Below, piece by piece: positions 4,515-41,092 of a stretch of DNA of 64,000 bases. The number at the start of each line of letters is the position of its first letter. Position 1 is the first letter of the stretch. The position numbers and the translations under genes are program-made. A model generated the notes under the pieces. It had not been told where the DNA came from and did not search any database. It saw only the letters and a list, made by a program, of their open reading frames with translations. The stretch is from sequence record ON000910.1. The stretch is one strand, 5' to 3'.

Positions 4515-5570
4515 ATGATTATTTTTGAAAGCGTTCAATCGCAGCGTGCATTAGAGTACGCATCTAAGTTTATCGTCGATAAGCTTGAAACACAATTAGA
4601 AGCTGCTCTGAGTAGCCCACCATTCGACCCGAACAAACTCGCACTTAATACCAAGAATCTGAACATCAAAACTGGTGAAACTGAGTTCGATGCGCTTCTT
4701 GCGCGTGGTATCGTTGCTTATCTTAAACTTGATAACCAAAACCCAACCGAAATGGGTGTTTGGCGCGGTGCTTTACACGACCCAGAAGCAGGTGAAGCAG
4801 GGAACTTGCAAATCACCGTTGATATAACCGGTGTCACTGCGGTGAGTCAGATTATGGCTAAGTTTAGAGTCGAGAAAGAACAGATGTACAGCACTACATT
4901 ACATGAACTTCAACATGCTTATGATAACTGGCGTTCTGGTGATATAGAAGACTTCGAGACACGCGACGAAGAGGGTGTATATCAACACTCAGGGCGTAAT
5001 AGAGCTTATATCGATAAAGAGTTCATTCGACATGCTAAAGCAGGTCACAAAGCGACACACGACGAATATCAGAACTATTCGCACGAGATAAACGCTCGTT
5101 ATGCACAAGCGATTGCAGATACTAAAGCAGATTTTAAAAATTCACCAGCCACTGCTCAAGCATGGATTAATCGATTTAAACACAACTTTGATGGGTGGGA
5201 CAATATACCAGAAGAGTCTAAGAAACGATTGATTTCGCGTGCAGGGGCTGAACACAGTGAGTCGAGACAACCGTTTAAAGGTAAAGAAAGCAGCTTGATG
5301 TATGCATTGAAAGGGTTTGATGTGAGATACACCAGAGATAAGAAGTTTAGTAAGATTGGTTATTGGTTCAGTCAGTTTAAATACGACGGTCGTAATTCTA
5401 GCGAATTGCTAGATAAACTTGAATTACTAGCACATAAAACTGAAGGTGTAGTTGCACTACCACTTGATGATATACGAGCAAACTCAGCATTATTCGCTGA
5501 AATGCGTAATCGTATGAATCTAGGTTCATGGGAACGAATGGGTTCTAATCATATGATCTACCGACCATAA
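4515..5570 (+). CDS. HEXXH zinc metallopeptidase-like protein, candidate internal virion protein
   Basis: TTLHELQHAYD plus downstream HEINARYAQ (gluzincin-like third ligand); MIIFE N-terminus. Confidence 0.6.
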   Translation: MIIFESVQSQRALEYASKFIVDKLETQLEAALSSPPFDPNKLALNTKNLNIKTGETEFDALLARGIVAYLKLDNQNPTEMGVWRGALHDPEAGEAGNLQITVDITGVTAVSQIMAKFRVEKEQMYSTTLHELQHAYDNWRSGDIEDFETRDEEGVYQHSGRNRAYIDKEFIRHAKAGHKATHDEYQNYSHEINARYAQAIADTKADFKNSPATAQAWINRFKHNFDGWDNIPEESKKRLISRAGAEHSESRQPFKGKESSLMYALKGFDVRYTRDKKFSKIGYWFSQFKYDGRNSSELLDKLELLAHKTEGVVALPLDDIRANSALFAEMRNRMNLGSWERMGSNHMIYRP

Positions 5571-5594
5571 AAAGGGGCTTTCGCCCCTTTTTTT
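5571..5594. terminator. Bidirectional terminator
   Basis: A-run AAGGGGC-tttc-GCCCCTT T-run between convergent genes. Confidence 0.85.
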
Positions 5595-6213
5595 ATTCTT
5601 CATCGCAAATTGTATATGCTTCATCTTCGACGACCATGTGATATGTCCATCTGATTTCTCGTTCAGCGTATAGCAAGTTATCCACAAGAAATCCACAGCC
5701 ATGTGATGCACGATGCCAGTCGTTGTATGGTTTGTCAGGTCGAACGTCTTCCCAGTAAGATTCTCGCTTGAATACTAACGAGTCATCTCGAAGATCTTCA
5801 TAACCGAATTTCCAATTGTGGTCGCGAAGCGTATCAAGACCTTCAACTTCCCAATCGCGATGATCCCCGAAGTCCCAACCTTCGCGCTTCACACCGTGTG
5901 ACTCAACACACTTACAGAGTGGGATGTCCCCAGTCTTTTTGTTGACGATAGCAACAACTACGCCACGTTCAAAGCACGATACTACGTTTTTGATGATCAG
6001 AACGTCGTGTTCTTCTTTGTATTTCACATACGCTGGCTCGATTGATACGTATACATCAGCATCACCATACCAGATTTCTTTATTGTACCCGATTTTCAAT
6101 TTCACATGTTCGTAAATTGAAAGAATATTCGGCTTCATTGCTTCATTTACGATGCGAGTGTAAACCTTGTTGTTAATTTGATTCAACTCTCGCAATGTTT
6201 GTTCAACGTTCAT
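5593..6213 (-). CDS. Hypothetical protein
   Basis: 206-aa ORF in the operon. Confidence 0.7.
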   Translation of the reverse strand: MNVEQTLRELNQINNKVYTRIVNEAMKPNILSIYEHVKLKIGYNKEIWYGDADVYVSIEPAYVKYKEEHDVLIIKNVVSCFERGVVVAIVNKKTGDIPLCKCVESHGVKREGWDFGDHRDWEVEGLDTLRDHNWKFGYEDLRDDSLVFKRESYWEDVRPDKPYNDWHRASHGCGFLVDNLLYAEREIRWTYHMVVEDEAYTICDEE

Positions 6214-6225
6214 GTATTCTCTCTA

Positions 6226-6603
6226 TTAGCTATTGTAAAAGAATAGCCCATCTAGTGTTTTAACTGATTCTTCATTGAAGAACCATGCGATTGCGTCTTC
6301 ACGACGCTTAAAGCGTTTCATGTATGATGAATTGTCTGTACCGTAAAGCACAATTAACCACTCATAACCTTTATGGATTCGCTTCTGTTCGCGTTCTTCT
6401 TCATCTGAGCGTGTCGCTTGTTGCTCAGAGTCGAATAAATGGACAGCGCACCAGCGATGGTCACTCTCAGGTACGTACATTCCCCAAGAATCGCTGGGCG
6501 CTGTAATCGGCATGAATCCCAAGAATATCGTACCTTGCACGAATTGAGAACTCATGTAATTAACCATGTTCATAAAACGATTGGTCGAATATTTGTGTAA
6601 CAT
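6226..6603 (-). CDS. Hypothetical protein
   Basis: 125-aa ORF downstream of a GTTTATC-16-TATAAT promoter (6618-6646). Confidence 0.7.
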   Translation of the reverse strand: MLHKYSTNRFMNMVNYMSSQFVQGTIFLGFMPITAPSDSWGMYVPESDHRWCAVHLFDSEQQATRSDEEEREQKRIHKGYEWLIVLYGTDNSSYMKRFKRREDAIAWFFNEESVKTLDGLFFYNS

Positions 6604-6647
6604 AACATGCTTACTCTATTATAAGAAAAACACAGAAAAGATAAACA

Positions 6648-7325
6648 TCATTTGCGAAGTTTTTTAATGATTTTGTCGATTTCGCCGACGTTTTCTTTCC
6701 ACGACAGAACCCCACGAGCGTAGAATTTTTCTGTGTCAGAAGAATCTTCAGTGAGTTCATAAGGTGTCGCATTGACAATGCAATCTCTGAAGTACTCAAG
6801 CTGCTCGATTGTGTCATCGTATTTCGATTTCTCGAAATCATACATCGGGATATAACGACGCGAGCCACCCCATGCATACACCTCAAGTCGTGTTAAATCG
6901 GGTTGAATTTTGTATGCTTCGTCAATGTTGCACAGACGTTCGATTGTTCGCTCGTCTTCTGCCATATGAGATTCTAAACGCTTCTTCAACTTTTCTGTTG
7001 CTTCGGGGTACTCATCACCGATTTCTTTAATCACACGAGCACACCACCCAAGTCTATAATCTGAAGAGTCTTTCACATGTTGAATAATCTCCTCACGCGA
7101 TAAACGTGTAGGCTCTTTGACTTGGCGAGTCTCGAAATCCATGATATAACCATCTTTGAGAGTAATCCCATTACCGTTCGTAGCGAAAAGATGATCTAGT
7201 ACTGAAAATCGAGTCGGGAAAATCGTGTGATATTCTTGCATCACGTGTTTAATGTAGTCAGCTAATAACATCTTAATTCTCTCTAATTTCAAATTCAATT
7301 TCACCAATCTCGTCACCAAACTCAC
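6648..7325 (-). CDS. Hypothetical protein
   Basis: 225-aa ORF; the true start may be the internal Met (MLLADY). Confidence 0.7.
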   Translation of the reverse strand: MSLVTRLVKLNLKLERIKMLLADYIKHVMQEYHTIFPTRFSVLDHLFATNGNGITLKDGYIMDFETRQVKEPTRLSREEIIQHVKDSSDYRLGWCARVIKEIGDEYPEATEKLKKRLESHMAEDERTIERLCNIDEAYKIQPDLTRLEVYAWGGSRRYIPMYDFEKSKYDDTIEQLEYFRDCIVNATPYELTEDSSDTEKFYARGVLSWKENVGEIDKIIKKLRK

Positions 7326-7545
7326 TCTGTAGTTTCTCGATGACGAATTCTTGATACTTTTCTAATTCAAGCGTTTCGTCGTCAAACTTCTCGAAAAAGA
7401 TGCTCACGCCTTGTGTAAAGGGCATAAACACACCGTGTACGTCGTCTCGATCAATAGATGCTTCGATTCGGTCGAGCGTTTCATCAACGTCGTAATTCTC
7501 GTCATGAATGTTGATGAATATTTCTGTCAAGTCATTAATGTTCAT
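7273..7545 (-). CDS. Small, highly acidic early protein
   Basis: About 27 D/E versus 6 K/R in 90 aa; first gene after the promoter. Confidence 0.75.
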   Translation of the reverse strand: MNINDLTEIFINIHDENYDVDETLDRIEASIDRDDVHGVFMPFTQGVSIFFEKFDDETLELEKYQEFVIEKLQSEFGDEIGEIEFEIREN

Positions 7546-7612
7546 ATTGTTCTCTCTTTCGATTTGATATACGTATGATACAAAAAAGGGCTGACATCTG
7601 TCAACCCTTTTT
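7546..7612 (-). promoter_or_regulatory. Terminator/early-promoter cassette
   Basis: AAAAAAGGG-TTGACA-gatgtcagcccTTTTTT then TATCAT; the -35 lies in the hairpin stem. Confidence 0.75.
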
Positions 7613-7617
7613 TAATA

Positions 7618-9069
7618 TTATTCTTCGTCTTCTTCGTCTTTGTATTCAGATACATCAACACCGTTTTCTTCAGCAAGCTCAATAAGTGCTTCATCAAATG
7701 ACGGACCGAAGTTACCGTTGATAGCGTATTCAAACACTTCTTCTTGGTAAGGTTCAGAGTTCATCATCAAGAACTCAGCCGCTTCTCGACCATCCATACC
7801 CATCACTGTGAATACAGCATTAATTGCAGATGAACGTACGTCTTCGTCATGATCTGCTAGAAGTTCATCAACTCGATAACCTTGTTCGGCTACGTATTGG
7901 CGTTCTTCGTAATCATCTGTATCATCGATCATTCTATCCCAGATATCTTCTGCCATATCGCGACCGAATTCACTTTCGTAGCGTTTCGCATATGTGATAC
8001 GTGTGTCTGCATCGTCGTTTGAGAATGACCAATCCCACGCTGTGTCCCGTACATCTTCATCTGAGTCAAGAACAAGATCCCAAATACCAAAACCCATGTC
8101 CGCAGCTTGTTTACGGTGTTGCCAATCGCCAGATGAAGCAAGTTTATCGCCCATTTCGTAATCTGACTCAACTACCGCTGCACGAACGTCTTCGTCATCG
8201 TGGAAAATCAGCTCTTCGTGCATCAGACCCCAACTAGCAATACGAACTAGAGTTTGCCAATCTGCGTGTTCAATGATTTCATCTTCACGACCTTCATTGA
8301 TCCATGCTTCGATTTGATATTGATCTGCTTCATCAACAAAATCTTCAAGAGACGGTCCGCCACCGAATGCTGTATCGTAGCTGCTAGAACGCTCGTTCTC
8401 GTTGGTAAGAGTGAAAGAGACAGAACCACTCATGCTCATCAACGCTTGGTTAACGTCGCTGTCGCTCATTGAAAGAATACTGCGCGTCACGTTCTTACGA
8501 ACAGAGCGGAAATCGTTTGCACCACCTGCTAGACGTGCAAGCCAACGGTCGCTAATCTCAGTCGAATAGCCGTATTCTTTACCAAACGTCAACGATAGAG
8601 CGTAGTAAAGCATCGGACGAGAAATCAAGTCTTTCAATAGCTTTTTCTTGCTTTCTTCATCTAAACGAGTCGCTTCGCGTCGATTGTTAACAAGTGCGTA
8701 GTACTCGTGATTCTTTGGTAGTTCATAAGCTGCGCTGAAGTCATATTCATACGGCTTCATGCCCATTTCTTCTTCATACGTCTCGGTGAATTCACGTAGA
8801 GTCGTCAATACACCAGAGAATACCGCAGCCGCAGAGTGTCCTGCTTTACCTGTCTGAGCATAACCACCTGAGTTTTGGAATGTAATAGTGAAATAACCAG
8901 GGTTGCTTTCTTCAACACCAACTTCAAATCGCTCACCAGCAGCGTCGAATCGCGCTGAAGTCTCGCCCGTCCCGTTCTCATGACCCCAATCCCAATCAAT
9001 GTCGATATTCGCACGATCAGAAATCTCATCAAGGCGAACTTCTTGATAAAATTCGTTAAATTGTTTCAT
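7618..9069 (-). CDS. Acidic protein with DEDVR (HEAT-like) repeats, candidate internal virion protein
   Basis: MKQFNEFYQE N-terminus; DDEDVRAAV / DSDEDVRDTA / DHDEDVRSSA; TCTAAATA at 9098-9105. Confidence 0.7.
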   Translation of the reverse strand: MKQFNEFYQEVRLDEISDRANIDIDWDWGHENGTGETSARFDAAGERFEVGVEESNPGYFTITFQNSGGYAQTGKAGHSAAAVFSGVLTTLREFTETYEEEMGMKPYEYDFSAAYELPKNHEYYALVNNRREATRLDEESKKKLLKDLISRPMLYYALSLTFGKEYGYSTEISDRWLARLAGGANDFRSVRKNVTRSILSMSDSDVNQALMSMSGSVSFTLTNENERSSSYDTAFGGGPSLEDFVDEADQYQIEAWINEGREDEIIEHADWQTLVRIASWGLMHEELIFHDDEDVRAAVVESDYEMGDKLASSGDWQHRKQAADMGFGIWDLVLDSDEDVRDTAWDWSFSNDDADTRITYAKRYESEFGRDMAEDIWDRMIDDTDDYEERQYVAEQGYRVDELLADHDEDVRSSAINAVFTVMGMDGREAAEFLMMNSEPYQEEVFEYAINGNFGPSFDEALIELAEENGVDVSEYKDEEDEE

Positions 9070-9097
9070 TTAATTAACCTTTTAATGTTGTTTCTTC

Positions 9098-9105
9098 TAT
9101 TTAGA
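9098..9105 (-). promoter_or_regulatory. Late-promoter-like box
   Basis: TCTAAATA about 29 nt upstream of the ATG at 9069. Confidence 0.55.
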
Positions 9106-9111
9106 CAAAAC

Positions 9112-9140
9112 AAAAAAATCCCGTCTTAACCGACGGGATT
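9112..9140 (-). terminator. Rho-independent terminator
   Basis: AATCCCGTC-ggttaa-GACGGGATT plus T-run. Confidence 0.8.
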
Positions 9141-9143
9141 TAA

Positions 9144-10116: not shown

Positions 10117-10119
10117 AAA

Positions 10120-11186: not shown

Positions 11187-11196
11187 ATTTTTACCT

Positions 11197-12114: not shown

Positions 12115-12122
12115 ATTTGTCC

Positions 12123-12356: not shown

Positions 12357-12357
12357 A

Positions 12358-12654: not shown

Positions 12655-12660
12655 AATTTA

Positions 12661-26643: not shown

Positions 26644-27104
26644 TACTGCTCCTTAGTATCGACCTGAATCTTTAAATGGTCGATGATGAATTGAAATTGT
26701 GTATGTGTTGAAAATGGAAGAATCTTACCATCTTTCTGAGCGTGAAGCTTCAGTTCATGACGATCTTCAGCAATCAATAGTGTATCGCGAGTATGCTCGA
26801 CTTCTTGAAAGTCAGTGTACATTACATCAACGTTTAATTGCTTACCGAGCGTATCAAACCAAGCGCGTTGTTGTTCAGCAATAACCGAAACTTTGCTCAA
26901 AACGGCAATGAATGAAATCTTTTGATTTAAGAGAAAATCAAGGACAGCAGTTGACGGTAGACGCTCATAAAGCTTGACTTCAATTGCTTTATTGAGTACG
27001 TTGTCACGCTCTTTTTTCTCAAGCTGGTCGATTTGAGGCGCACCTGCAATTGCAAACCCAAGAGTGTCATCAGATAGAATGTTGCTCGTTTCAATATAAA
27101 TCAT
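26643..27104 (-). CDS. Hypothetical protein
   Basis: ORF after the promoter GTTTAAC-17-TATAAT (27128-27157). Confidence 0.7.
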   Translation of the reverse strand: MIYIETSNILSDDTLGFAIAGAPQIDQLEKKERDNVLNKAIEVKLYERLPSTAVLDFLLNQKISFIAVLSKVSVIAEQQRAWFDTLGKQLNVDVMYTDFQEVEHTRDTLLIAEDRHELKLHAQKDGKILPFSTHTQFQFIIDHLKIQVDTKEQ

Positions 27105-27498: not shown

Positions 27499-28146
27499 TT
27501 ATTTTGTCCAAACTACCGAAGCACCTGAACCAGATTTCTTGTAACCGTACTTTGAAAGGTCTGGAATACGTTGAAAGCTGTCTTTCGCTGTAACTACACC
27601 GCGAGTAGCAATTTCTTTAGCCACGTCTCTTGTTGCATTACCTGCTTCAATCTGCATAGACAGATCTGGATATTCTTGAGCAATGAATTGCATCATGATA
27701 TCGTTTTTGCTTTTACCACTGATCACGTTCAACACAGTTTGAGTAATGTCAGTACCGCGAGTGATATGGAAAACTTTACCACGAGCACGAGACTCAACAT
27801 CACGAATAATCTCTGCTTCGACTTCTTCAGGTACAACGTTCAGTACGTAAGAAGTAAACGCCGTATCGAATGATTCCCCATTTGGGATAGTCAGACTGAC
27901 ATCAGTCCAACCATCAGCAGATGTACCATTGAATTTGTCATATGCATACGTTTTGATGCCTTCAGAGCGTAAAAATTCAGCGTTACGACCGTATTTACCA
28001 GCACCATAGTCAAGAGCAGTACCACCCGGTGTAAACATACCTTTTTTGTATAGTTTAACTAGTGCTGCTACTTCTTTACCACGTATCGACGTTGCTGCGG
28101 AACTGTACTTTTGTACTTCAGTTAAAAATTCACCAAATTGCTTCAT
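27499..28146 (-). CDS. Class I SAM-dependent methyltransferase, candidate internal virion protein
   Basis: ALDYGAGKYG motif I, YAYD, YVLNVV; start MKQFGEFLTE at 28146 with AGGTG RBS. Confidence 0.75.
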   Translation of the reverse strand: MKQFGEFLTEVQKYSSAATSIRGKEVAALVKLYKKGMFTPGGTALDYGAGKYGRNAEFLRSEGIKTYAYDKFNGTSADGWTDVSLTIPNGESFDTAFTSYVLNVVPEEVEAEIIRDVESRARGKVFHITRGTDITQTVLNVISGKSKNDIMMQFIAQEYPDLSMQIEAGNATRDVAKEIATRGVVTAKDSFQRIPDLSKYGYKKSGSGASVVWTK

Positions 28147-28153: not shown

Positions 28154-29599
28154 CTACTTAATATCAATATCAATCAGATAGTTCGTTGCGTTAACGCTGA
28201 ACTCAATCAAAGTACCGTCAACCGAAACGTCAACGCCGTTTTCAACGATGTTTTCCATCATCGAGTAAAGTGTTTCTTGATCAAGCATCGCTTCAGAGAA
28301 AGATTGACCAACCTTGAATGAACTGAACTGATCATTTGCAAGAGCACGAATCAGTGAATCAACATCATCAACCATTTCAGTCACTGGACGTAGACTAGAC
28401 ATGATATTCGGGTGGAATACACGATTCGACTCAGCCATTGTTGAAAATGCAGTCACTGTTTGACGCTCAGGGGTAACACAACCATCGAACGATAGCATAG
28501 CTTCAGCAAATGCTTTACAGTCAAAACGTTTCACGCCTTTACGTTCCATCATCGCAATCATATCAAGAAGCGGGTAACCTGCTTCAGATAATTCAACGCG
28601 ATATTCTTCACACACACGACCTGCACGCATAGCATGTTCCGCGTTTGTTAGAACAATACTTGTGTTGTTGTGTTTCAGCTTCCAACCGTTGTCAAAATAC
28701 GCTTCTTTCACATCAACAAGATTTTGCCATGCAGTCGATGTCAGTGGCGCAGTCGCGATTTCTTTCGTGAAAACGTTCTGAGCATGTTCAATCATGGTGA
28801 TGTTCTGTTTCAGATCGTATGCTTTGAAGCCTTCTAGCATCGGCAAGCCAGTATCGTCTTTACGTTCACGAGCGTATGATACGTCTTTCGCTTCTTTTAC
28901 AATGAACAAGTCCATGATTTTACGGTTCAGTGCAGCCAATGTCAGTGCATTTTTACCAGACTTGATTTTCATCTCAGTGATGTCAGACAGTTCAGCTTTT
29001 GAGTCAACCGATTCAACAGTCACATAAACGTCACCAAGCTCGATGTTTTCAGCCATTGACAGTACTTCGGAGGCTGAATTGTCGTCGATTGATAGCGATT
29101 CAATTACAAGCTTATCAGAATCAGCAAGATTAATTTTCATTTCACGCATAGGGAAAACAACGTGAATGTCATTTTTCTTATAACCAAGCTTAGTCGCTTC
29201 AGCAACAACTTGATCTAAGTAACCGCCTTTAATCACGATGCTAGGAAGACGCGCTTCAGTACACATGATCATAGACTTAACTTGCTGTAGCTCATGTGCT
29301 GGCAATGATAAGAATTCGTTTTCCATAAGCAAGTTGATTGTGCTTACGTTCTCGCTCAGATTGATATCGAAGTTTTTCTCATCGACGTTTTTATCTTCAG
29401 CAAGTTTAGTACCCATGATAGATTTAAGCTCATTTGCCTTTTCCATCATGCCGATAGTTGTTTCAACGCCTTTGCCTTTGCTGAACTCAGTAGATGCAGT
29501 GCCTAGCTCAACAATAACTTGACCAAACTTAGGGTAGATTTTACCACCCTGAGTTTGACGGCGATTTTCACTCAGAAATGAGTCAAAGTTACCTAACAT
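28154..29599 (-). CDS. Hypothetical protein with a degenerate P-loop-like N-terminus, candidate internal virion protein
   Basis: MLGNFDSFLSE; YPKFGQVIVELGTASTEFSKGKG. Confidence 0.6.
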   Translation of the reverse strand: MLGNFDSFLSENRRQTQGGKIYPKFGQVIVELGTASTEFSKGKGVETTIGMMEKANELKSIMGTKLAEDKNVDEKNFDINLSENVSTINLLMENEFLSLPAHELQQVKSMIMCTEARLPSIVIKGGYLDQVVAEATKLGYKKNDIHVVFPMREMKINLADSDKLVIESLSIDDNSASEVLSMAENIELGDVYVTVESVDSKAELSDITEMKIKSGKNALTLAALNRKIMDLFIVKEAKDVSYARERKDDTGLPMLEGFKAYDLKQNITMIEHAQNVFTKEIATAPLTSTAWQNLVDVKEAYFDNGWKLKHNNTSIVLTNAEHAMRAGRVCEEYRVELSEAGYPLLDMIAMMERKGVKRFDCKAFAEAMLSFDGCVTPERQTVTAFSTMAESNRVFHPNIMSSLRPVTEMVDDVDSLIRALANDQFSSFKVGQSFSEAMLDQETLYSMMENIVENGVDVSVDGTLIEFSVNATNYLIDIDIK

Positions 29600-30129: not shown

Positions 30130-31029
30130 TTATACCGTTACTGCGTGAGTGTATGACAGCTTAGAACTGTTCGCAAGAACACCAAGATTATCCCAATCGA
30201 TTTCAACTGCACCCGTTTGATTATCTTCTAATGGTGCAACGGTCAATGCGTATCGAGCAATCACACCGTAAATTGGGTGGAATGATTTTGAGTCTTGTGT
30301 TTTATATTGATATGCAATACCAGCGTCTGTTGCTTTGTCAAAGTTGTATGGGCTGAATACTAAACTTGAGATTTCATAATCACCAAGTTCTTTCTTAACA
30401 CCAATTGTTACGTAGTCAGTCGTTGCATACTTGTCATGAACTAGATATAACCCAGAGTCACATTTATACATGCTAGTATCACCAATCTGTGTAGCCATAC
30501 CAGTGCCCGTCAATAGACCAAATGCTTCACCACCTGCTACGATATATGTACCTGTACAACCCGTTGACTTTTCAATCTCAGCAGCAGATGCATGGACGAA
30601 CGAGTATAATTCTCGACCTTTATCAAAACGGTTAGTAATAGCAGATAGCGTAATTGCACTACCAACAGTTGAAATACTGTTTAGTGCATCGATGATATTA
30701 GTGTTGATGTCATCTGCGATTTGATCAGCAATAGAATCTGTGATAATCGATTCATTGACACCAAGTGCTTGCATGTCTTGAATTGTTTCAAGTGAGATTT
30801 CAGTTTTTAGCTTTGATGATTGAACTTGTGCATACCAGCGATCAAGTCTAAAACCATGTGGCAGCCACCCACTCGCGTCATCAGCTTCAGCTACAGATTT
30901 GAAACCGAACGCAGTCGCAACCGGTTGAGTTGTTGGCTGTTCTGAAACGATTTGCGTAAATATTAACGGGTATAGTCGTTTTTGAACAGAAACAATGTCT
31001 GGTAAACCGTTACTATTAGATACAGTCAT
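30130..31029 (-). CDS. Capsid-protein-family (gp23/gp24-like, vertex-type) protein
   Basis: QPTTQPVATAF, SKLKTEISLETIQD, IADDIN; perfect TATAAATA at 31086-31093. Confidence 0.75.
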   Translation of the reverse strand: MTVSNSNGLPDIVSVQKRLYPLIFTQIVSEQPTTQPVATAFGFKSVAEADDASGWLPHGFRLDRWYAQVQSSKLKTEISLETIQDMQALGVNESIITDSIADQIADDINTNIIDALNSISTVGSAITLSAITNRFDKGRELYSFVHASAAEIEKSTGCTGTYIVAGGEAFGLLTGTGMATQIGDTSMYKCDSGLYLVHDKYATTDYVTIGVKKELGDYEISSLVFSPYNFDKATDAGIAYQYKTQDSKSFHPIYGVIARYALTVAPLEDNQTGAVEIDWDNLGVLANSSKLSYTHAVTV

Positions 31030-31084
31030 TGTATGATTCCTTTAATTTATTGCCGCATTTCAGCGGAGAGAATGTTATTTTCTT

Positions 31085-31324
31085 TTATTTATATGTCTGG
31101 TTATCAACCCATTGCTTGAGTTCTGGAAGATGACCTATGTATGTATCACCATGCATAGCAAGAGGCACGCGAATGTTGCGCACCCCACCAAGTTTCTCAT
31201 GCAATTTATCGATATCAGATTGAGACTGTAACTCTATTACAGTGTACGGGACGTTTTTGAACTTACAGAGGGAAATTGCGTGACGACAGCCGTCACAGTT
31301 GGGAATTGTGTATATCGTTATCAT
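31085..31324 (-). CDS. Glutaredoxin
   Basis: YTIPNCDGC, VP, YIG. Confidence 0.9.
   Translation of the reverse strand: MITIYTIPNCDGCRHAISLCKFKNVPYTVIELQSQSDIDKLHEKLGGVRNIRVPLAMHGDTYIGHLPELKQWVDNQTYK
31086..31093 (-). promoter_or_regulatory. T4 late promoter
   Basis: Exact TATAAATA. Confidence 0.75.
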
Positions 31325-32316: not shown

Positions 32317-32324
32317 AATGTTCT

Positions 32325-32928: not shown

Positions 32929-33086
32929 AATTATTCTCTCTGTTCGTTAATTCGTTTCGATGAAGCTATATTAGGTCTATATTGTTTTTCGTGCAACCTT
33001 TTTCTTACAAAAAGTTTAAAATAATTTCAACGGGTGTTATGAGCAATCATAAATACACATATATTTCTAAAGGGTGAGTCTATAAA

Positions 33087-34715
33087 ATGATTGGATTTCA
33101 ACAATTAAATGAAAACATGAGCGCAACGTACGACTATTATCCGGCTCGCTCGACCAAAGAAAACAAATTCTTTGTGATCGACATGAAAGGCGAAGCCAGA
33201 GACATCGTTGTTTCGTTCACAACTAAAACAAAATCAGATATCGGAAATCGCGGTAAACGTGCGTGGTTCTGTACTGTATCAGCAATGCGCGGCAAAAAAG
33301 GCGGTGTTACTATTCGTGAAATGGGAGATGAACAAAAGCTTCAACAAACTATTGTTAAAGTGGTTCAAGATTTCATGATCAAACGTCGTGCGAATGTCGT
33401 TTCAATGCGTGTGCAGAAACTAGGTACGGGTAAGATGTTCGACTTGCGCGTTAAAACGTTGTTTAAAAAGCTACGTTACGGCTGTGATACAACTAAGATC
33501 ATTGGCGTGGGTGGTGAAGAAATTTCGCAAGATTACAGCTTCTTTATTGTAACCAAACCAGGGTATAATGCCGATAAGCTATTCGAAGCATCTGAAGAAA
33601 CAATTAACGATATTGCGTTAAAAATGTCACTCGAAACTGATATTTCAAGCAAGAAAACGATTATCGTAACTGCCGATGCTGCGTATGACGACTATGAAGA
33701 TGACGTACTAGGTAAATGGGTAGAAGAAAACCCCGCTGCACGTGTTCCAAATGATGTTCTTCAAATGCCTCAATATGAAGCGCGTGTAAGTTCGTCTGTT
33801 CGTTCTCAATTGAATGAAAGCAATGAACATGTTCTTGCTAATGCTGCGAAAGGTTTAATTGATATGAGTTTGAATCTTGAAACTGTGGCAGTTTCATTGA
33901 ATTCATATATCGCCGAATCGAAGAAGCCTCAAAGCGTTCTGAATAGTATCATGGAATCTCGCTCACGTGCTCATGCAAGTCAGTATGAACGTCTTTCTTT
34001 GCAACTTATGCAGGAAGATTCATTTGCGGGTCTATCGTCACTTACACAAGCTGCTATTGCTAGATACTCCGCGACTCGTTTTTCATGGAAGGTGAATGAA
34101 GAGTTATTACACGGAACGGGTGTTGATAAAGAATCACAGATTGTCTCACGCATCGACCAAGCGTTTTCTGAAGCTGGTATGATTGCTGGTGGAATGACGT
34201 TATATCGTGGCTGTGAAATGTCAAGTAAACATGTGCGCTCTATTCTTGAATCTGGCTCGTTTGTTTCGACTGCGTTTATCTCAACGTCAATCGACCCTCT
34301 TGTTGCTTGTAAGTTCGTTGAATCAAGCTCTAAGAACATCATTGATTCAACTGCTAAGAATAGTAAATCAGATATGCGTTCTCTGCTTGAGTCAGATAAG
34401 AAAATGAATGTTGTATTCATCATAGAAGCGAGCGGCTTGCCTGTTTTAGCTTCAGGTAAACACGGTATGAAAGACTCAAAAGAGATTATCATCAACCGTA
34501 ATACGATGTTTGAAGCTGACGTTGTTCAAATGTCTGAATACGACGCTGTAATTCGATTGAAAATCAAAGAAGATACGAAGCAAGGTGTATTGTCTGCTTT
34601 CAAAAAGCAAGAGCGTTTACACGAGCTTTCAGAAGTAGCCAATTTCATGCGTTCTGTTGATGTAGATATCGATGCAGATAGACTAACAAAAGAGCGTAGT
34701 CCTCTAACACCATGA
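33087..34715 (+). CDS. alt: Alt-like NAD-protein ADP-ribosyltransferase
   Basis: TLYRG, FISTSIDP, SKEIIINR (R-STS-E fold); CATAAATA at 33048-33055; near ligase as in T4. Confidence 0.8.
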   Translation: MIGFQQLNENMSATYDYYPARSTKENKFFVIDMKGEARDIVVSFTTKTKSDIGNRGKRAWFCTVSAMRGKKGGVTIREMGDEQKLQQTIVKVVQDFMIKRRANVVSMRVQKLGTGKMFDLRVKTLFKKLRYGCDTTKIIGVGGEEISQDYSFFIVTKPGYNADKLFEASEETINDIALKMSLETDISSKKTIIVTADAAYDDYEDDVLGKWVEENPAARVPNDVLQMPQYEARVSSSVRSQLNESNEHVLANAAKGLIDMSLNLETVAVSLNSYIAESKKPQSVLNSIMESRSRAHASQYERLSLQLMQEDSFAGLSSLTQAAIARYSATRFSWKVNEELLHGTGVDKESQIVSRIDQAFSEAGMIAGGMTLYRGCEMSSKHVRSILESGSFVSTAFISTSIDPLVACKFVESSSKNIIDSTAKNSKSDMRSLLESDKKMNVVFIIEASGLPVLASGKHGMKDSKEIIINRNTMFEADVVQMSEYDAVIRLKIKEDTKQGVLSAFKKQERLHELSEVANFMRSVDVDIDADRLTKERSPLTP

Positions 34716-34718
34716 TCG

Positions 34719-34746
34719 AAAAAGGGAGCAATTTGCTCCCTTTTTT
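34719..34746. terminator. Bidirectional terminator
   Basis: AAAAAGGGAGCAA-t-TTGCTCCCTTTTTT between convergent genes. Confidence 0.85.
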
Positions 34747-35632
34747 ATTCAACTCTAATAAGACTATGACCCCAAACTTCTTCAAAGTCGCTTACCTTTT
34801 CAACCATGTAAAGTGTGTTGTAGTCAAGAATCAGCATTTTACCATCTTCTAGAATCGCGCCCTTCTCTAGTAATTCAGCTTCTCCATCACCACCCCATGC
34901 AGGTTTAGCAATAATAGTACCTAGCAGACTTTCCCATATTTCAACCGTGTCTAAATTATCAAATTTATTACCATTGATTGATGCTTTAATTTGAACTGTT
35001 TTATCATTAACTCGTTTGATTGTAGCGAACCCATTTGTCATACGAATCAATTCAAAATCACCAGGTCGTTCACACTCAAATAGCGTCGCCCATGTGAATG
35101 CGTTCACTCTAGGGAAATCAACATATGTGATCTCATCTTCGACTTTAATACCATCATTTGGTAGTCGTCTAATTTCATTAGATGGGTTGTTGTTTTTTAA
35201 TACAAACATACGCCCGTGCGTTTGTAAAGTATAGTCCATCTGCTTTGCGTATCGTTCAGCCATGCGCTTGTAAAGATTATAGCGTTTCTTTGCATCTCTG
35301 TCGTCATGGTCTGCAAATGCGCTGAATGTAATGTAATCTGGGTTTTCTCGTTTAGCCTTGTCAAACGTAGCTGCAAGCACCGTACTCATTACCATCAATG
35401 AATCTTTCGCGTTGCTCGATTTCTTTAATTCATATGAATACTGACCATCTGGTCTTTTCCACATAAATGAAACGTCAATTATGCGTCCGCGTGCTTCATC
35501 TTTGCTAGTTATGATTGCTTTATACATAGTCCCGCCGATTTCAAAAAACGCTTCGTCGTCGGTCAGCCAGTCATAATTCGCTGCTCTATCAAACGCTTCA
35601 AATAGCGCGTCATATCCCTCGAATATAATCAT
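34745..35632 (-). CDS. Late hypothetical protein, candidate internal virion protein
   Basis: Perfect TATAAATA at 35656-35663; MIIFE N-terminus. Confidence 0.7.
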   Translation of the reverse strand: MIIFEGYDALFEAFDRAANYDWLTDDEAFFEIGGTMYKAIITSKDEARGRIIDVSFMWKRPDGQYSYELKKSSNAKDSLMVMSTVLAATFDKAKRENPDYITFSAFADHDDRDAKKRYNLYKRMAERYAKQMDYTLQTHGRMFVLKNNNPSNEIRRLPNDGIKVEDEITYVDFPRVNAFTWATLFECERPGDFELIRMTNGFATIKRVNDKTVQIKASINGNKFDNLDTVEIWESLLGTIIAKPAWGGDGEAELLEKGAILEDGKMLILDYNTLYMVEKVSDFEEVWGHSLIRVE

Positions 35633-35655
35633 TTTATTGTCTCTCTAAATGAAAG

Positions 35656-35663
35656 TATTTATA
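35656..35663 (-). promoter_or_regulatory. T4 late promoter
   Basis: Exact TATAAATA, directly downstream of the ligase terminator (35675-35698). Confidence 0.75.
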
Positions 35664-35698
35664 CGCACAAACGCAAAAAGGGGCATAAGCCCCCTTTA

Positions 35699-37036
35699 TT
35701 AACCTTTGAACCCGCTCATTTCTTCAAGCGCATTCGCAACATCTTTGTCATCACGGAATTGCACGAAAATAGGCAAGAAACAAGACCATGTTTCTTTATT
35801 ACGTGCGCGTGTGATTGCGTTGTAGTTGATTTCAACAATCATACCGATTACTTCATCACGACGTTCCCAAATTTCAGCACGCTGTTTATCACTGAAGCCA
35901 CTACCGACTTTAGTAATCAACATACCGCAAGCTGAACGAAGAAGAAGAGCACCCATTTTGCCTTTGTTCTTCTTGTCGCCTTCGATTACTTCAATGATCT
36001 CTAAATCACCATCGTGAACTTCTTTGTATTTCACAAGTGATTTGCTTCGCTTGTTTTCCCAGAGTGCATCTGGGTCTTTCAAGATGATACCTTCTAGACC
36101 TTGAGCAACGTACTGATTGTAGATTTCAGATGCTTGTTCTTTTGTAGAAACAGTCTGCCACGGAATCGGTTCGATGATACCACGTGCTTTAATAGCAACA
36201 TCTGCAAGAATCTGTTTACGTTTACTGTACGGCATGTTCAATTCATTCGAGTTACCGAAATAAACGTCTTCAGGGATGATATCCCATACTTGAAATACAA
36301 TGTCAGCCTGTTCTTTCGGTGTGATTGTACCTTTACTTGCTTTGTTGACAATGCCATTACCAGTCGAACGGTCTTCAACCTCATGTAAACCGTTTGGCGC
36401 GTACACAAGCTCACCGTCGATAACAAAGCCGTTTACACCCATTTCAGTCAAGCCTTTCTCAACTTTGACTAGACCTTGATAGCGTTTACCGTTACGCGAT
36501 GTAAGAGTAATGTTACCATCTAAGTCAACATGAGCGAAACAACGAGCACCATCAGCTTTTAATTCAGCGTATGCGATTTTAGTTAGAATCGCGTCGATTA
36601 GTTTGTCGTTCTTCGGGCTTGCAAGCATTTGAGGTTGTTCTGGAATCAGTTTCTTCCAAACTTTGTTTGCAGTACCACCCGTACAACCAGTTCGAAGATC
36701 TTTCAAGATAACACGACGAATCACTTCCGCGTCGTCTTCAGAAACTGAAGCGAGTATACGAGCAACAAAATCTTGTGCAGAATGACCGCGCACTTGATTC
36801 ACAACCAACGCACTAAACACTTGCTCTAGTGCATCTTCTAGTTCGGTATATTCATGCACATATGCTTCACCTGCATTCACTTCAGGCAGTTTCTTCATAT
36901 TAAACTGATACGTAGGTGTGTATGCAAGCTCAAATACACGCTTTAGCAATTCATTGTCTTTTTCAGACTTCAGGATTGCTTCTTTTTCAGTGCGTTTAGT
37001 CGTTGCTGCTAGTTTATTCAGGATTGGTAGAATCAT
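35699..37036 (-). CDS. 30: ATP-dependent DNA ligase
   Basis: ELKADGAR, IDGELV, EGIILK, KYK. Confidence 0.97.
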   Translation of the reverse strand: MILPILNKLAATTKRTEKEAILKSEKDNELLKRVFELAYTPTYQFNMKKLPEVNAGEAYVHEYTELEDALEQVFSALVVNQVRGHSAQDFVARILASVSEDDAEVIRRVILKDLRTGCTGGTANKVWKKLIPEQPQMLASPKNDKLIDAILTKIAYAELKADGARCFAHVDLDGNITLTSRNGKRYQGLVKVEKGLTEMGVNGFVIDGELVYAPNGLHEVEDRSTGNGIVNKASKGTITPKEQADIVFQVWDIIPEDVYFGNSNELNMPYSKRKQILADVAIKARGIIEPIPWQTVSTKEQASEIYNQYVAQGLEGIILKDPDALWENKRSKSLVKYKEVHDGDLEIIEVIEGDKKNKGKMGALLLRSACGMLITKVGSGFSDKQRAEIWERRDEVIGMIVEINYNAITRARNKETWSCFLPIFVQFRDDKDVANALEEMSGFKG

Positions 37037-37226
37037 CTGGACCCTCTATATAAATTTCAGGACGAACACGTGCAACAAAGCACTGTTCGTGTAAATCATT
37101 TTTGTACAACACTTTAAGTGCATCTTGCTCTTTCAGGTACAATGCAGGCATTGTAACATCACCGAGATCAATAATCGCCACTTCTTGGTTGCTTTTCATT
37201 AGTATAGCAAACATCATTTTCCTCAA
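37014..37226 (-). CDS. Hypothetical protein
   Basis: ORF in the operon. Confidence 0.55.
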   Translation of the reverse strand: MRKMMFAILMKSNQEVAIIDLGDVTMPALYLKEQDALKVLYKNDLHEQCFVARVRPEIYIEGPDDSTNPE

Positions 37227-37467
37227 AATATACGTTGCCGTTGTTGATTGTTACTAAGAATGGCTTACCTGCGATATGATCACCGTAAATGTGAACAATA
37301 TAATCACAAGCTTCTTTGTTCCATTCTTGCCAATCGGTTTGCAATTCAGCTTCCCATTCTTCTCGATTCGAAAAGAACGGCTTGCCTTTTGACTCTCGCT
37401 TATCTAACGCAACAGCACGTTTTGCAAGTGCGCTATCAGCATGAATAATATAAGCTCGTTTAATCAT
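37168..37467 (-). CDS. Hypothetical protein
   Basis: Follows the promoter GTTTAAC-17-TATAAT (37500-37529). Confidence 0.65.
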   Translation of the reverse strand: MIKRAYIIHADSALAKRAVALDKRESKGKPFFSNREEWEAELQTDWQEWNKEACDYIVHIYGDHIAGKPFLVTINNGNVYFEENDVCYTNEKQPRSGDY

Positions 37468-37530
37468 AATTAACCCAAAAAAGCCCCGACAGGAGCTTTA
37501 TTATATGATGAATGTAAGACGTGTTAAACT

Positions 37531-38124
37531 TTATTCGTGAATAAAATCTAATAGCTTTGACATATGATGAACGTCTGCTCGTTCGTCATATCGATTGAGG
37601 TGTACCACTTTAAGGTCGTGAAAACACTTCTTGATTTGCTCAGTATTTTCTAACTGATCATCAATGAAACCGATCACGTCGTGATCTGATACTAGCTGAG
37701 AGACATAACCGACTTTGCTCTCATCACCGCGAATAGTAATCAATTCGCTGAAACAACCCGGGAAGAATGTTTCTAAGTTGAACTTGCGCACAAGCCAGTG
37801 ATCAGTTGAATCACCGAATTTAGTCAGCGCAACAAGATTGTATTCTTTCGCGATTTTGTGAACGTTCTCTACCGCATCAGGGAACGCAGTCATGTACTTA
37901 CCGTGCTCAAGATTATACTTCTCAAGTAAGTCAAATGCTATTGAACGCTGCTCGACACCGAATAAATCACGTACGTCAACATGCTCTTTAGCAGTGAAGT
38001 GTTTTAATGCAAGAACGGGGTCGATACCACATCGCTTGCAGAATAGCGGTAGCTGGCTTGCCCAATCAATAAGCACACCATCAACGTCGAAAATTAGAGT
38101 AGGTTTTTGTTTCTTGTCTGTCAT
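37531..38124 (-). CDS. 30.2: HAD-family hydrolase (T4 gp30.2-like)
   Basis: LIFDVDGVLIDW, FIDD; start at 38124. Confidence 0.8.
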   Translation of the reverse strand: MTDKKQKPTLIFDVDGVLIDWASQLPLFCKRCGIDPVLALKHFTAKEHVDVRDLFGVEQRSIAFDLLEKYNLEHGKYMTAFPDAVENVHKIAKEYNLVALTKFGDSTDHWLVRKFNLETFFPGCFSELITIRGDESKVGYVSQLVSDHDVIGFIDDQLENTEQIKKCFHDLKVVHLNRYDERADVHHMSKLLDFIHE

Positions 38125-38137
38125 AATATATTTCTCG

Positions 38138-38359
38138 TTACATATATTCAGCGCCCGTGAAGGCAATGAACATAAAAGTAAAACAAAACACAGCAACAGC
38201 TACTAACAATGCAGTTACACTAGCTATCATTGAATCGAATTCGTCTTCAATAATCTTATTGACTACATATACTAATGGCGTTGCTGATACGAATACTAGA
38301 ATAACACCTAGTGTTGCTAATAAAATTTGAATCATATTGTGCTCCTTTATTTGAAGCAT
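38138..38359 (-). CDS. Small membrane protein
   Basis: Two TM segments; follows the hairpin promoter at 38362-38397. Confidence 0.6.
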   Translation of the reverse strand: MLQIKEHNMIQILLATLGVILVFVSATPLVYVVNKIIEDEFDSMIASVTALLVAVAVFCFTFMFIAFTGAEYM

Positions 38360-38399
38360 CTATGATAATGAAAAGGGCTGCAAATTGCAACCCTTTTGT

Positions 38400-38909
38400 T
38401 TATTTCATCCACTGTTTGCGCTTTTTAGAGCGTTTCCACCCGCGCTGTGGAGATTTGTAAGACGATAGACCATCCCAATCTAGAAGACAGCGAACTGTAT
38501 GAGCACGTTTTTTGCGAACTACTTTACCGTATTCGGCTTCAATCTCGTCTTCACAGAACTTGTTATGATGCATTTCAGACATCAAACCGTTACCGCGTCG
38601 AGCATGAATCCAGTTCTTGTAGCAACCAGTATGTGGCACTGGCGTGTAACGAAACACGTAGTTACCTTTGTAACGTGCTAGACATTCACCATTCCGAATT
38701 AGGTCAATCATACGTCTTGCGCTAGTTGACATGTAAAACCCAACACGTTCTGGGCTCCAGAAGCTCTGATAACGAACGTATGTTCTAGCCCACTCTGGTA
38801 CCCATTCACCATCCCATAATTCGAAAACATGATGAGGTCCCATTTCGCGTGAGTTGTATAGTGGTAGATCTTTTTCTTTTACGCCTTTGTATTTTTTGAC
38901 TTCAGTCAT
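38400..38909 (-). CDS. Hypothetical basic protein
   Basis: C-terminal RGWKRSKKRKQW. Confidence 0.7.
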   Translation of the reverse strand: MTEVKKYKGVKEKDLPLYNSREMGPHHVFELWDGEWVPEWARTYVRYQSFWSPERVGFYMSTSARRMIDLIRNGECLARYKGNYVFRYTPVPHTGCYKNWIHARRGNGLMSEMHHNKFCEDEIEAEYGKVVRKKRAHTVRCLLDWDGLSSYKSPQRGWKRSKKRKQWMK

Positions 38910-38968
38910 CGTTGTTTCTCCAAGTTAAATTACTTAGTGAAACAACTCCTTACGATGAAATTTCTTCA

Positions 38969-39214
38969 TTATTCAATTACCTCATACGCTTCGTTAAGGA
39001 AGTCATCAACATCATCTACGTTGATTTTGTCTTCATCTATTGCTAGTAAATCACATAGCAATTCTAAAATATCATGTTTACGAATTGTCCCATGACTGAA
39101 TACAGTCTGACCAATCCATTCGGCTACCGACCAGTAATAGTCTTCAAAATCACCATCGCATTCGTAATTTGCTAGGTTGTACTGCTCTAGAAGCATATTC
39201 AAATCGTGCGTCAT
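38969..39214 (-). CDS. Small acidic protein
   Basis: D/E-rich, 81 aa. Confidence 0.65.
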   Translation of the reverse strand: MTHDLNMLLEQYNLANYECDGDFEDYYWSVAEWIGQTVFSHGTIRKHDILELLCDLLAIDEDKINVDDVDDFLNEAYEVIE

Positions 39215-39254
39215 TGTATTACCTTTTATTGTTTTATTTGACGCACGTATTTAA

Positions 39255-39443
39255 TCATTTAATTTTGAACAATTTCATCACGATTAGAGCAATCATTAGT
39301 ACTGGCGTGATGACTGTTGATAATAAATTCACCACGCCTTTACTCGCTTGACCACCGTTTTGGCGGTACGTTTCGTGTAATGTATCTTGAATCGCAACTG
39401 TCAAAAGTGCACCAATCAATAAGTAAACAAAAATAAAAGTCAT
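39255..39443 (-). CDS. Small membrane protein
   Basis: Two hydrophobic segments. Confidence 0.6.
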   Translation of the reverse strand: MTFIFVYLLIGALLTVAIQDTLHETYRQNGGQASKGVVNLLSTVITPVLMIALIVMKLFKIK

Positions 39444-40168
39444 ATGTCGAAAATCCTAAGCCCATATTCTGGGTTTTCTGAGCCGTATGCACGTGGGTTA
39501 CACAGTACATTACAGCCATTTACGTGATAGTCAAATTCTTGATGAACATGACCGTGAATTGCAAAACTGAACCCTTCAAGTAAATGGTCAAGGTCAGTGC
39601 AATAAAAACTATTCGTACTTGAATACGCATAGTAAGATGAAATGCTCTTCAGAGAAGGGGCGTGATGTGTGATTAACACTTTCTTACCTTCAATCTCGCG
39701 ACATTTCTCAATAAATTTGACTGATTTACAATGAAGTGCATGTACATCTTCACCGTACAAAGGTCGCCATTGCGGACCGCGAATCTTACGACGGTCATTC
39801 ATGTTGTCTTTCCAACGTTGACCCTCAAACCAGTCATTGACTTCGTGCCACAGCGTAGTTCCGCAGAATGTCACGTCGTCAATCTGAACTGTATTTTCAA
39901 GCAAGACGTGAACATTGTCAACCGAAGTTTCAAATTTATGTCGCTCGTGAATCGCAAGACCCCACCAATCGTGATTTCCCGGCACTGCGATAACAGCGCG
40001 CCAACGGTCGGCTACAGCTTCTAAATCGCGCACTGTGCGCCCTTTGCTGTTAATGTCACCCGCTACTACCAATACAGCGTCTTTGTCGCCTGTAATCGAT
40101 TCTAGCGCGTTCTCTGCGTGATAGTCGTTGTGAATATCACTACAGTAATAAACTTTTAAATTTGCCAT
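39440..40168 (-). CDS. Metallophosphoesterase
   Basis: SDIH, AGDI, PGNHD, THH, HGHVH. Confidence 0.9.
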   Translation of the reverse strand: MANLKVYYCSDIHNDYHAENALESITGDKDAVLVVAGDINSKGRTVRDLEAVADRWRAVIAVPGNHDWWGLAIHERHKFETSVDNVHVLLENTVQIDDVTFCGTTLWHEVNDWFEGQRWKDNMNDRRKIRGPQWRPLYGEDVHALHCKSVKFIEKCREIEGKKVLITHHAPSLKSISSYYAYSSTNSFYCTDLDHLLEGFSFAIHGHVHQEFDYHVNGCNVLCNPRAYGSENPEYGLRIFDI

Positions 40169-40425
40169 CGAATCTCCAAAATGTTATCGACATAAAATGC
40201 GTTGTAGTTGTGTAAACGCAGATATTCAATCAATAGACGTTTCATGCTATGACTTTCAATACCTGGCAATTCGTCTTGCATTCTGATATTAATACCAAAG
40301 CGCATTTCATCAGTTGCTTGTGCAATGCGCTCATCTAGATGTTCTAGATCATCAACGGGAAACTTCTCTTCCATTACTTTGATGCTGCGTGCGCGTGCTT
40401 CTTCTGCTTTCATAATCATGCTCAT
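40156..40425 (-). CDS. Hypothetical protein
   Basis: ORF in the operon. Confidence 0.65.
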   Translation of the reverse strand: MSMIMKAEEARARSIKVMEEKFPVDDLEHLDERIAQATDEMRFGINIRMQDELPGIESHSMKRLLIEYLRLHNYNAFYVDNILEIRWQI

Positions 40426-40814
40426 GACTTTCGCCTCCAGTCAATTATAGTCAATATCATGCGTTCAGAACCGTGTTCCATCAACATACGATTCACATAA
40501 GCAAGTGCTAAACTGTGAGTCTCGTATTGCAAGTAGCCAATTTCTGACGGCTCGTGAGGGTTGATTCGATTTTTAATATCGAATGTATTCTTCACTGCTC
40601 TGATATTGTAACCTAATTTCTCGAACTCTGCAACCGCTGATTCATAAAATTCAGCTTTTATACCGACTTTTATCTCAAGCTCTGTATCAGCTATTTTATC
40701 AATTGATTTCAAAGTGTTATACAGAAAATCTTGAAATTCTTCGATTTTCTTTAACTGACGGTCGGACGGTTGCTTCGGCTTATAGCGTGACCGCATACTA
40801 GCAGCATCAAACAT
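40422..40814 (-). CDS. Hypothetical protein
   Basis: ORF in the operon. Confidence 0.65.
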   Translation of the reverse strand: MFDAASMRSRYKPKQPSDRQLKKIEEFQDFLYNTLKSIDKIADTELEIKVGIKAEFYESAVAEFEKLGYNIRAVKNTFDIKNRINPHEPSEIGYLQYETHSLALAYVNRMLMEHGSERMILTIIDWRRKS

Positions 40815-40825
40815 AATATTTTCTC

Positions 40826-41092
40826 TCAGAAGTAGTCAGCGTACCTATCTAAGATTCGCTTCGGGATTTTTAAGTTTACAAATCTCTTACCTTTCAAACC
40901 ACCATCATATGCGATTTCTGCAATCAGATCTTCGTACATGTCTGGTTCAAGTTCGTCGATAATGTCCTTGTACTCTTGTGGAAGCTGTCTCTTCAGCTTC
41001 TTAACGAGCGCGTGAATCTCATTTATCGTGAGATCACGCAACTCTTGGTATGTCATTTCGTTTAGGGATATTTCAATAAAAGACTTTAGCAT
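40826..41092 (-). CDS. Hypothetical protein with an internal-protein-like N-terminus
   Basis: MLKSFIEISLNE; ATTAAATA at 41111-41118. Confidence 0.6.
   Translation of the reverse strand: MLKSFIEISLNEMTYQELRDLTINEIHALVKKLKRQLPQEYKDIIDELEPDMYEDLIAEIAYDGGLKGKRFVNLKIPKRILDRYADYF

Follow-up and report, generated by a model that had tools for sequence, protein, structure and literature searches.

The last 64 kb of Vibrio phage XZ1 (ON000910.1), a KVP40-like Schizotequatrovirus, raises the question of whether seven genes scattered through its replication-gene blocks encode proteins that are packaged into the phage head behind a short N-terminal tag and delivered with the DNA. The stretch analyzed, referred to below as the window, is 64,000 nucleotides long and identical in sequence to this end of the record (window position = record position − 185,513); between positions 27000 and 35000 it shares 99.7% identity with the KVP40-like Schizotequatrovirus ValKK3. 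An initial annotation, made from the letters of the window, had proposed the seven as a dispersed family of injected internal head proteins, and the N-termini that it quoted all match exactly at their coordinates. Five of the 107 heuristically called genes in the window lie on the plus strand, and these include 4515 and 33087 (candidates are named here by their first coordinate), the two that had correctly been placed on the opposite strand from the rest. In ValKK3 all of the candidates except Alt are labelled hypothetical, and the KVP40 reference record has 'hypothetical protein' for all seven, the Alt homologue included. The candidates, with their ValKK3 counterparts, are as follows:

4515–5570, plus strand: 351-aa HEXXH protein (ORF158, phrog_15811), N-terminus MIIFE, with HELQH (130) and HEINAR (190).
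7618–9069, minus strand: 483-aa acidic helical-repeat protein (ORF163, phrog_13195), with a strict decapeptide resembling the T4 capsid targeting sequence (CTS).
27499–28146, minus strand: 215-aa protein of class I S-adenosylmethionine (SAM)-methyltransferase fold (ORF195, phrog_14016), with a strict CTS-like decapeptide.
28154–29599, minus strand: 481-aa Zeta-toxin/AAA_33 relative (ORF196, phrog_14490), with a CTS-like N-terminus; the weakest of the set.
33087–34715, plus strand: 542-aa Alt-like ADP-ribosyltransferase (ORF202), with a 9-residue N-terminal peptide whose last residues are LNE.
34745–35632, minus strand: 295-aa hypervariable protein (ORF203, phrog_6387), with MIIFE, a spacer ending LFE, and a DUF6934-like domain.
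40826–41092, minus strand: 88-aa protein (ORF215, phrog_14461), with a 12-residue N-terminal peptide whose last residues are LNE.

None of the seven genes is broken, the absent Walker A of 28154 being common to its relatives, and the N-termini of all seven contain [LIFY]-x-E, ending within 5–12 residues. In T4, the internal proteins (IPs) IPI, IPII, and IPIII and the Alt protein carry a CTS (Mullaney and Black 1996; reviewed in PMC9026906 and PMC5694885), a tag of ~10 residues in which positions 4 and 7 serve targeting and positions 8 and 10 processing (PMC9026906), and T4 Alt loses six residues only, being cut at ITE (PMC5694885). We consider it likely that at least five of the candidates (4515, 7618, 27499, 33087, and 34745) belong inside the head, as proteins of the T4 Alt/IP type that are targeted by a tag and then processed, with 40826 possibly a sixth and the membership of 28154 doubtful. 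Each would be transcribed late from its own gp55-type promoter, or in the case of 27499 probably by read-through from gp24, and would be brought into the prohead core by a short N-terminal capsid-targeting propeptide, after which the Peptidase_S77 prohead protease would cut behind hydrophobic-x-Glu. The proteins would then remain in the DNA-filled head, exit together with the DNA, and become active in the cell infected next. By analogy with T4, targeting would be the work of the tag, and the cut would fall precisely behind the Glu that is predicted for it; the phage probably transports a small set of enzymes together with its genome. The word family, used in the initial annotation, is apt for the shared type of tag and misleading beyond it, because the cargo proteins are mutually unrelated and only the type of tag is common to the members.

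Orthologues of most candidates were observed directly in the particles of a relative. Mass spectrometry of 6E35.1a particles detected 94 proteins (PMC12028318, a 2025 study of Schizotequatroviruses, Table S4), to which the candidates were mapped through PHROG identity, synteny, and alignment. The spectral counts (replicate 1/replicate 2) were 122/233 for Alt (33087; VP6E351A_0095), 58/109 for 7618 (_0134), 31/79 for 27499 (_0103), 16/61 for 34745 (_0094), 18/25 for 4515 (_0140), and a marginal 3/0 for 40826 (_0082), while the orthologue of 28154 (_0102) was undetected. Six of the seven are thus found in particles, against a background of 94/442 (p = 4.7e-4), and the counts of the five clear orthologues are comparable to those of minor structural proteins. 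Across the syntenic replication-gene region of Table S4 (_0079 to _0163), a mean of at least 20 counts is reached only by gp24, the five candidates, and _0154, a paralogue of 34745 encoded just outside the window. Judged by these orthologues, the presence in virions that had been predicted is clear for five candidates, marginal for 40826, and not borne out for 28154. A whole-genome scan of ValKK3 revealed further tag-bearing genes (ORF145-147, 272, 275, 276, 327, and 358), of which every orthologue existing in 6E35.1a was detected and the motif-less neighbours were not; genome-wide, predicted tag-bearing orthologues were detected in 11 of 12 cases (p = 2.5e-7).

The second line of evidence is the placement of putative late promoters inside otherwise early-type surroundings. 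TAAATA boxes had been reported upstream of five candidates, and all are real and on the correct strands (4477, 9098, 33050, 35656, and 41111), the two on the plus strand lying 2 nt from the positions first given. The interval from the 3' end of TAAATA to the ATG is 18–32 nt at the five candidates, and the late boxes keep their position in KVP40, 6E35.1a, and 1.081.O. These elements, together with that of gp24, are:

4477–4482, plus strand: late-promoter-like box CCTAAATAA, 32 nt before the ATG of 4515.
9098–9141, minus strand: terminator-like hairpin (9141–9116), then late box TCTAAATA (9105–9098), upstream of 7618.
30130–31093, minus strand: gp24 vertex gene and its TATAAATA box (31093–31086).
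33050–33055, plus strand: late box CATAAATAC, 31 nt before the Alt ATG.
35656–35697, minus strand: terminator-like hairpin (35697–35677), then a perfect TATAAATA (35663–35656), upstream of 34745.
41111–41116, minus strand: late-like box ATTAAATAA, 18 nt before the ATG of 40826.

TAAATA is depleted in the window (26 observed vs 47.3 +/- 7.0 in dinucleotide-preserving shuffles), consistent with stray late promoters being selected against. A box in promoter position, defined as 12–50 nt upstream of a gene, is present at 10 of the 107 genes, and five of these ten are candidates (hypergeometric p = 4.6e-5); the TATAAATA and TCTAAATA forms also stand before gp23, gp22, and other late genes of the phage. 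At 34745 and 7618 a hairpin directly precedes the box, so these genes look like insulated late cassettes within replication-gene blocks. The genes 27499 and 28154 lie downstream of gp24 and gp55, and the gene spacing suggests a probable late transcript gp24-gp55-28154-27499 starting at the gp24 box. The literature searched yielded no time course of gene expression for these phages.

The third line of evidence is the boundary between tag and protein, which was compared among the orthologues in KVP40, 6E35.1a, and 1.081.O (38–95% identical to one another over the 20 residues after the predicted cut). Across the four lineages the propeptides vary in length and sequence, yet hydrophobic-x-Glu always abuts the conserved block, the exception being 28154 in 1.081.O. 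In the methyltransferase, for example, three different propeptides stand before an identical mature start (...FLTE|VQKYSS). In the ORF203 family, MIIFE is invariant although the proteins are otherwise 45–50% identical, and it either runs straight into a conserved AF[DS]R block or is followed first by a spacer of 6–7 residues, again ending in x-E. Among 21 homologues of the ORF158 family, the most distant at 20% identity, all keep Glu5, and remote members have longer tags with the same xFE end; the dismissal of MIIFE as noise was rejected on account of this invariance and lengthening. The phage's own core proteins carry like sites (gp22 ...LLE|A, gp21 ...LIE, and gp23 ...LNE|A near residue 61), and the prohead protease and scaffold are recognizable in ValKK3 (Peptidase_S77, E = 1.9e-98; T4_CASP, 4.6e-71; Gp23, 4.8e-120). 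The conserved x-E boundary points, indirectly, to removal of the propeptides by a protease.

A strict T4-like pattern (hydrophobic at positions 4, 7, and 8 and Glu at 10, with a shift of up to 2) matches 3 of the 107 window genes, 7618, 27499, and 28154, every one a candidate, and in its unshifted form matches 4 annotated starts among the ~390 genes of ValKK3, where ~0.64 are expected. In a predicted (AlphaFold2) model of the methyltransferase 27499, residues 1–20 are disordered and lie outside the fold (predicted local distance difference test score, pLDDT, ~50). A relaxed pattern, consisting of a hydrophobic pair followed by x-E, admits MIIFE and similar starts; it was rejected as a diagnostic feature, its background being 20% of window genes (21/107), with 15 of the matches in non-candidates. 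It is to this looser form only that 4515, 33087, 34745, and 40826 conform, so that the members beginning MIIFE, MIGFQQLNE, or MLKSF... are not recognizable by motif alone and must rest on other evidence; since the looser pattern fits ~15% of unrelated genes, the motif by itself is weak evidence. The restriction of the motif to virion genes that the initial annotation implied thus partly fails for the looser members.

Several observations weigh against packaging of the candidates. Besides the background of the relaxed pattern, the absence of 28154, and the marginal count of 40826, two neighbours of head genes in 6E35.1a carry [IV]-x-E near the N-terminus and are both undetected in particles, and the orthologue of 28154 in 1.081.O has Ala in place of the Glu preceding the predicted cut (position P1). 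Neither 27499 nor 28154 is preceded by its own late box at the usual distance. The proteomics comes from 6E35.1a, a relative 45–80% identical, and not from XZ1; its particles were precipitated with polyethylene glycol and not gradient-purified, and the evidence from it consists of spectral counts per protein, the cut site being a predicted one. Metabolic enzymes are also in the particle list at low counts, and the 4515 orthologue, at ~0.5 counts per kDa, stands near dUTPase and little above contaminant level. An alternative, with the non-candidate matches of the relaxed pattern in its favour, is that the candidates are ordinary late cytoplasmic proteins, whose likeness to tagged proteins arises by chance or from translation-initiation bias (Lys or Ile codons after ATG) and whose particle signal is lysate carry-over from a preparation that contains dUTPase, GTP cyclohydrolase, NAMPT, and spanins. 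We regard this as very improbable, given that the five orthologues outcount every recognizable contaminant of the same genome region, that the x-E boundary is kept while the propeptides diverge, with Glu5 invariant in the ORF158 family, and that among 112 homologues of the methyltransferase, derived for the most part from uncultured phages, 59% have a tag-like start, vs 19% of window genes.

If the proteins are packaged, their nature bears on what they would do. Of the labels given in the initial annotation, ADP-ribosyltransferase was borne out, methyltransferase was borne out by fold, and HEXXH was borne out as an invariant motif of 4515. Sequence profiles confirm 33087 as an Alt-like ADP-ribosyltransferase (PF03496, 24.2 bits against a cut-off of 23.4; phrog_802, 1.4e-88), and tblastn retrieves the named alt genes of Acinetobacter, Aeromonas, and Escherichia phages (E = 3e-6 to 1e-3). 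The predicted model of 27499 (pLDDT 90.6) identifies it as a putative class I SAM-dependent methyltransferase: all 50 of the 50 listed Foldseek matches in the Protein Data Bank (PDB) are methyltransferases or methyltransferase-fold proteins (probability 0.99–1.0, TM-score up to 0.59), and D46, G48, A49, G50, and D70 are invariant in the family, in keeping with a Rossmann-like fold that has a glycine-rich SAM motif and an acidic residue ending strand 2. Of its 233 relatives many carry PF13489, most derive from marine phages that have not been cultured, and some share a contig with T4-like genes; Schizotequatrovirus-like vibriophages are the only cultured phages in which the family occurs. In 4515, a possible zincin-like metallopeptidase, HELQH is invariant in 21 homologues, and HEINAR too is invariant; matches to Peptidase_M76 and SprT-like domains are sub-threshold only, and the ORF158 profile found no match among PDB sequences. 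A metagenomic contig (L015) that encodes a distant 4515 homologue also has, no more than 10 kb from this HEXXH protein, a gene for an ART-PolyVal protein and another that is Mom-like, neighbours that hint at a link to delivered effectors of the polyvalent-protein type.

The remaining cargo is less readily classified. The repeat-protein label of 7618 (isoelectric point, pI, 4.2) stands on HEAT matches that are sub-threshold only (18.5 bits vs the 23.5 cut-off), and its homologue in 1.081.O is armadillo-like according to the depositors' annotation. A DUF6934-like domain of ~135 residues in 34745 is common to five paralogues, where it stands behind different short tags; in ORF276 it is C-terminal, behind an MSIIFE start. 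The paralogue loci are:

ValKK3 64064–66314: DUF6934-like paralogue locus, just before the window start.
L005:36812–37732: DUF6934-like paralogue locus.
Window 34745–35632, minus strand: ORF203 equivalent, as above.

DNA homology to Va3, VH7D, R10Z, and PVA23 (98–99% over the aligned part) ends at window position 34744, and phages with 99%-identical flanks carry a 47%-identical allele instead; together these make the 34745 locus an allele-replacement hotspot. A weak match of the ORF203-family profile to a ribosomal-interface protein in the PDB (E = 0.0045) was disregarded. No recognizable domain was found in 40826, PDB sequence searches with 28154, 27499, 7618, Alt, and 34745 gave no significant match, and NCBIfam and PADLOC scans of the seven proteins returned nothing usable.

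Presence in particles does not by itself show ejection, and an alternative is that the proteins are head-associated assembly or structural accessories (prohead-core or scaffold helpers, or DNA-condensing head-internal proteins) and not delivered effectors. The T4 core does contain tag-bearing, protease-processed proteins that are not ejected, such as gp67 and gp68 (PMC5694885), and 7618 and 28154 (pI 4.8) are acidic and scaffold-like; 28154, with nine [LI]-x-E sites and absent from mature particles, behaves as expected of a degraded core protein. In T4, however, Alt is an enzyme known to be ejected, the cofactors that a SAM methyltransferase and an ADP-ribosyltransferase require are cytoplasmic, so that neither is likely to work inside a capsid, and the hypervariability of 34745 between near-identical genomes is the pattern of an arms race and not of an assembly part. 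We regard a purely accessory role as unlikely for the set and prefer the reading of the five as internal head proteins of the T4 Alt/IP type. A part in counter-defence or host takeover would follow by analogy with T4 Alt and IPI.

The case of 28154 is more evenly balanced. It is a distant relative of Zeta-toxin/AAA_33 kinases with a gap at Walker A in 28154 and its close kin; distant relatives have the canonical glycine-rich Walker A and match PF06414, and the segment is missing from the whole Schizotequatrovirus clade. This is the protein that had been labelled 'P-loop-like', and it is probably a pseudo-kinase. The chances are about even that it is an unpackaged, catalytically dead kinase-like cytoplasmic protein, perhaps a partner of the adjacent methyltransferase, with a resemblance to tagged proteins only: it went undetected in particles despite its 54 kDa, its Walker A and a late box of its own are missing, and Glu is replaced in 1.081.O. 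On the other side, the N-terminal pattern is retained in homologues at 38–45% identity, and L-x-E abuts the conserved block in distant Zeta-like relatives too.

In their proposed mechanism the candidates resemble the T4 IPs and Alt closely, with a short hydrophobic N-terminal propeptide ending in [L/I]-x-E, a Peptidase_S77 protease, a T4-type scaffold, TATAAATA-type late boxes, an Alt homologue within the set, mutually unrelated cargo, and one hypervariable locus. They differ from the IPs in that most of the cargo is 24–60 kDa and consists of enzyme-like or repeat proteins, whereas the T4 proteins are small and basic; some tags are 5–9 or 12–14 residues long and not 10, and the genes are single and scattered in replication-gene blocks, with terminator and late-promoter cassettes of their own. 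The candidates are probably members of the T4 CTS/internal-protein class, and since the mechanism would be the known T4 one with a new and larger cargo, they are new members and not a new class. The initial claim of a larger and more enzymatic set than that of T4 is upheld in that the candidates are more numerous and more enzyme-like than the T4 internal proteins of the cited papers; that they are injected effectors would follow from the T4 analogy.

Other phages offer looser parallels. The Dar system of P1 (DarB and partners) likewise includes several head proteins thought to enter the cell with DNA, with an N-terminal signal sufficient for packaging and protection from host restriction as its purpose (PMC9024508). 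P1, however, falls outside the T4-like phages; the signal of DarB, contained in 30 residues, follows no shared consensus, and packaging is stepwise and dependent on other Dar proteins (PMC9024508). No sequence relationship links the Dar proteins to the candidates. The ejection proteins of phiKZ and SPN3US are similar in comprising many head-internal proteins and paralogue families cut at small-residue-x-Glu by a T4-related protease, and different in that their propeptides are mostly >100 residues, the motif is A/S/G-x-E, and the cargo includes a virion RNA polymerase (PMC5694885). The literature searched, which did not cover the original KVP40 genome paper (Miller et al. 2003), yielded no paper describing this set; in the text of PMC12028318, the terms 'capsid targeting', 'injected', and 'internal protein' are absent, though the proteins are listed in particles.

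No PHROG or Pfam match ties any candidate to proteins annotated as internal to the head. Polyvalent proteins, which occur in phages as well as in conjugative elements and were reportedly described by Iyer, Burroughs, Anand, de Souza and Aravind in 2017, are said to combine domains proposed to be delivered with incoming DNA. Their repertoire is comparable (ADP-ribosyltransferase, methyltransferase, and zincin-like peptidase), although they fuse domains in one giant protein and here the genes are separate, each with its own tag. A broader and more tentative proposal, possible though on balance doubtful, is that the 27499-type methyltransferase represents a widespread class of capsid-packaged, DNA-delivered enzymes and that Schizotequatroviruses carry a disaggregated 'polyvalent protein' toolkit in the head. 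The toolkit would comprise two ADP-ribosyltransferase-like proteins, the methyltransferase, the HEXXH protein, and the diversifying DUF6934-like family, and would be a natural system whose injected proteome is defined by tag and not by cargo. If the tags act as proposed, the injected proteome of a T4-like phage would be predictable from tag, late box, and x-E boundary and, in KVP40-like phages, would amount to about a dozen proteins, whose enzymes could rewire the host, or disarm it, ahead of all phage gene expression. The tagged methyltransferase, with its wide distribution, and the hypervariable family of 34745 would be candidate early counter-defence factors of marine vibriophages.

Some further genes share individual features with the set. 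Outside the window, ORF358 of ValKK3 (L007:23655–24764) encodes an ADP-ribosyltransferase-like protein with a PARP domain (E = 1.4e-5), a strict tag, and a CATAAATA box, and its orthologue gave 18/4 counts in particles. Within the window, the orthologues by gene order of 41110–41325 and 39255–39443, _0081 and probably _0086, gave 7/6 and 5/5 counts; gene 41110 has an N-terminal peptide ending ILE. The 159-aa protein of 53900–54379 has a gp23-like domain according to the ValKK3 annotation, and its counterpart by size and gene order, the 18-kDa _0055, is in the particle list at 11/24. Near the N-terminus of the gp24 vertex protein (30130–31029) there is no [LI]-x-E, in contrast to T4 gp24, for which a short N-terminal propeptide is described, and the KVP40 record notes gp24 as possibly having an internal deletion. 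At 38969–39214, an 81-aa gene is preceded at 39 nt by a ATTAAATAC box and encodes a tag-like start with LLE as its last residues, and its 6E35.1a orthologue by gene order is undetected in particles. A 281-aa gene adjoining uvsW (55207–56052), with an N-terminus that is not tag-like and a TCTAAATAC box 39 nt upstream, may be a further isolated late gene.

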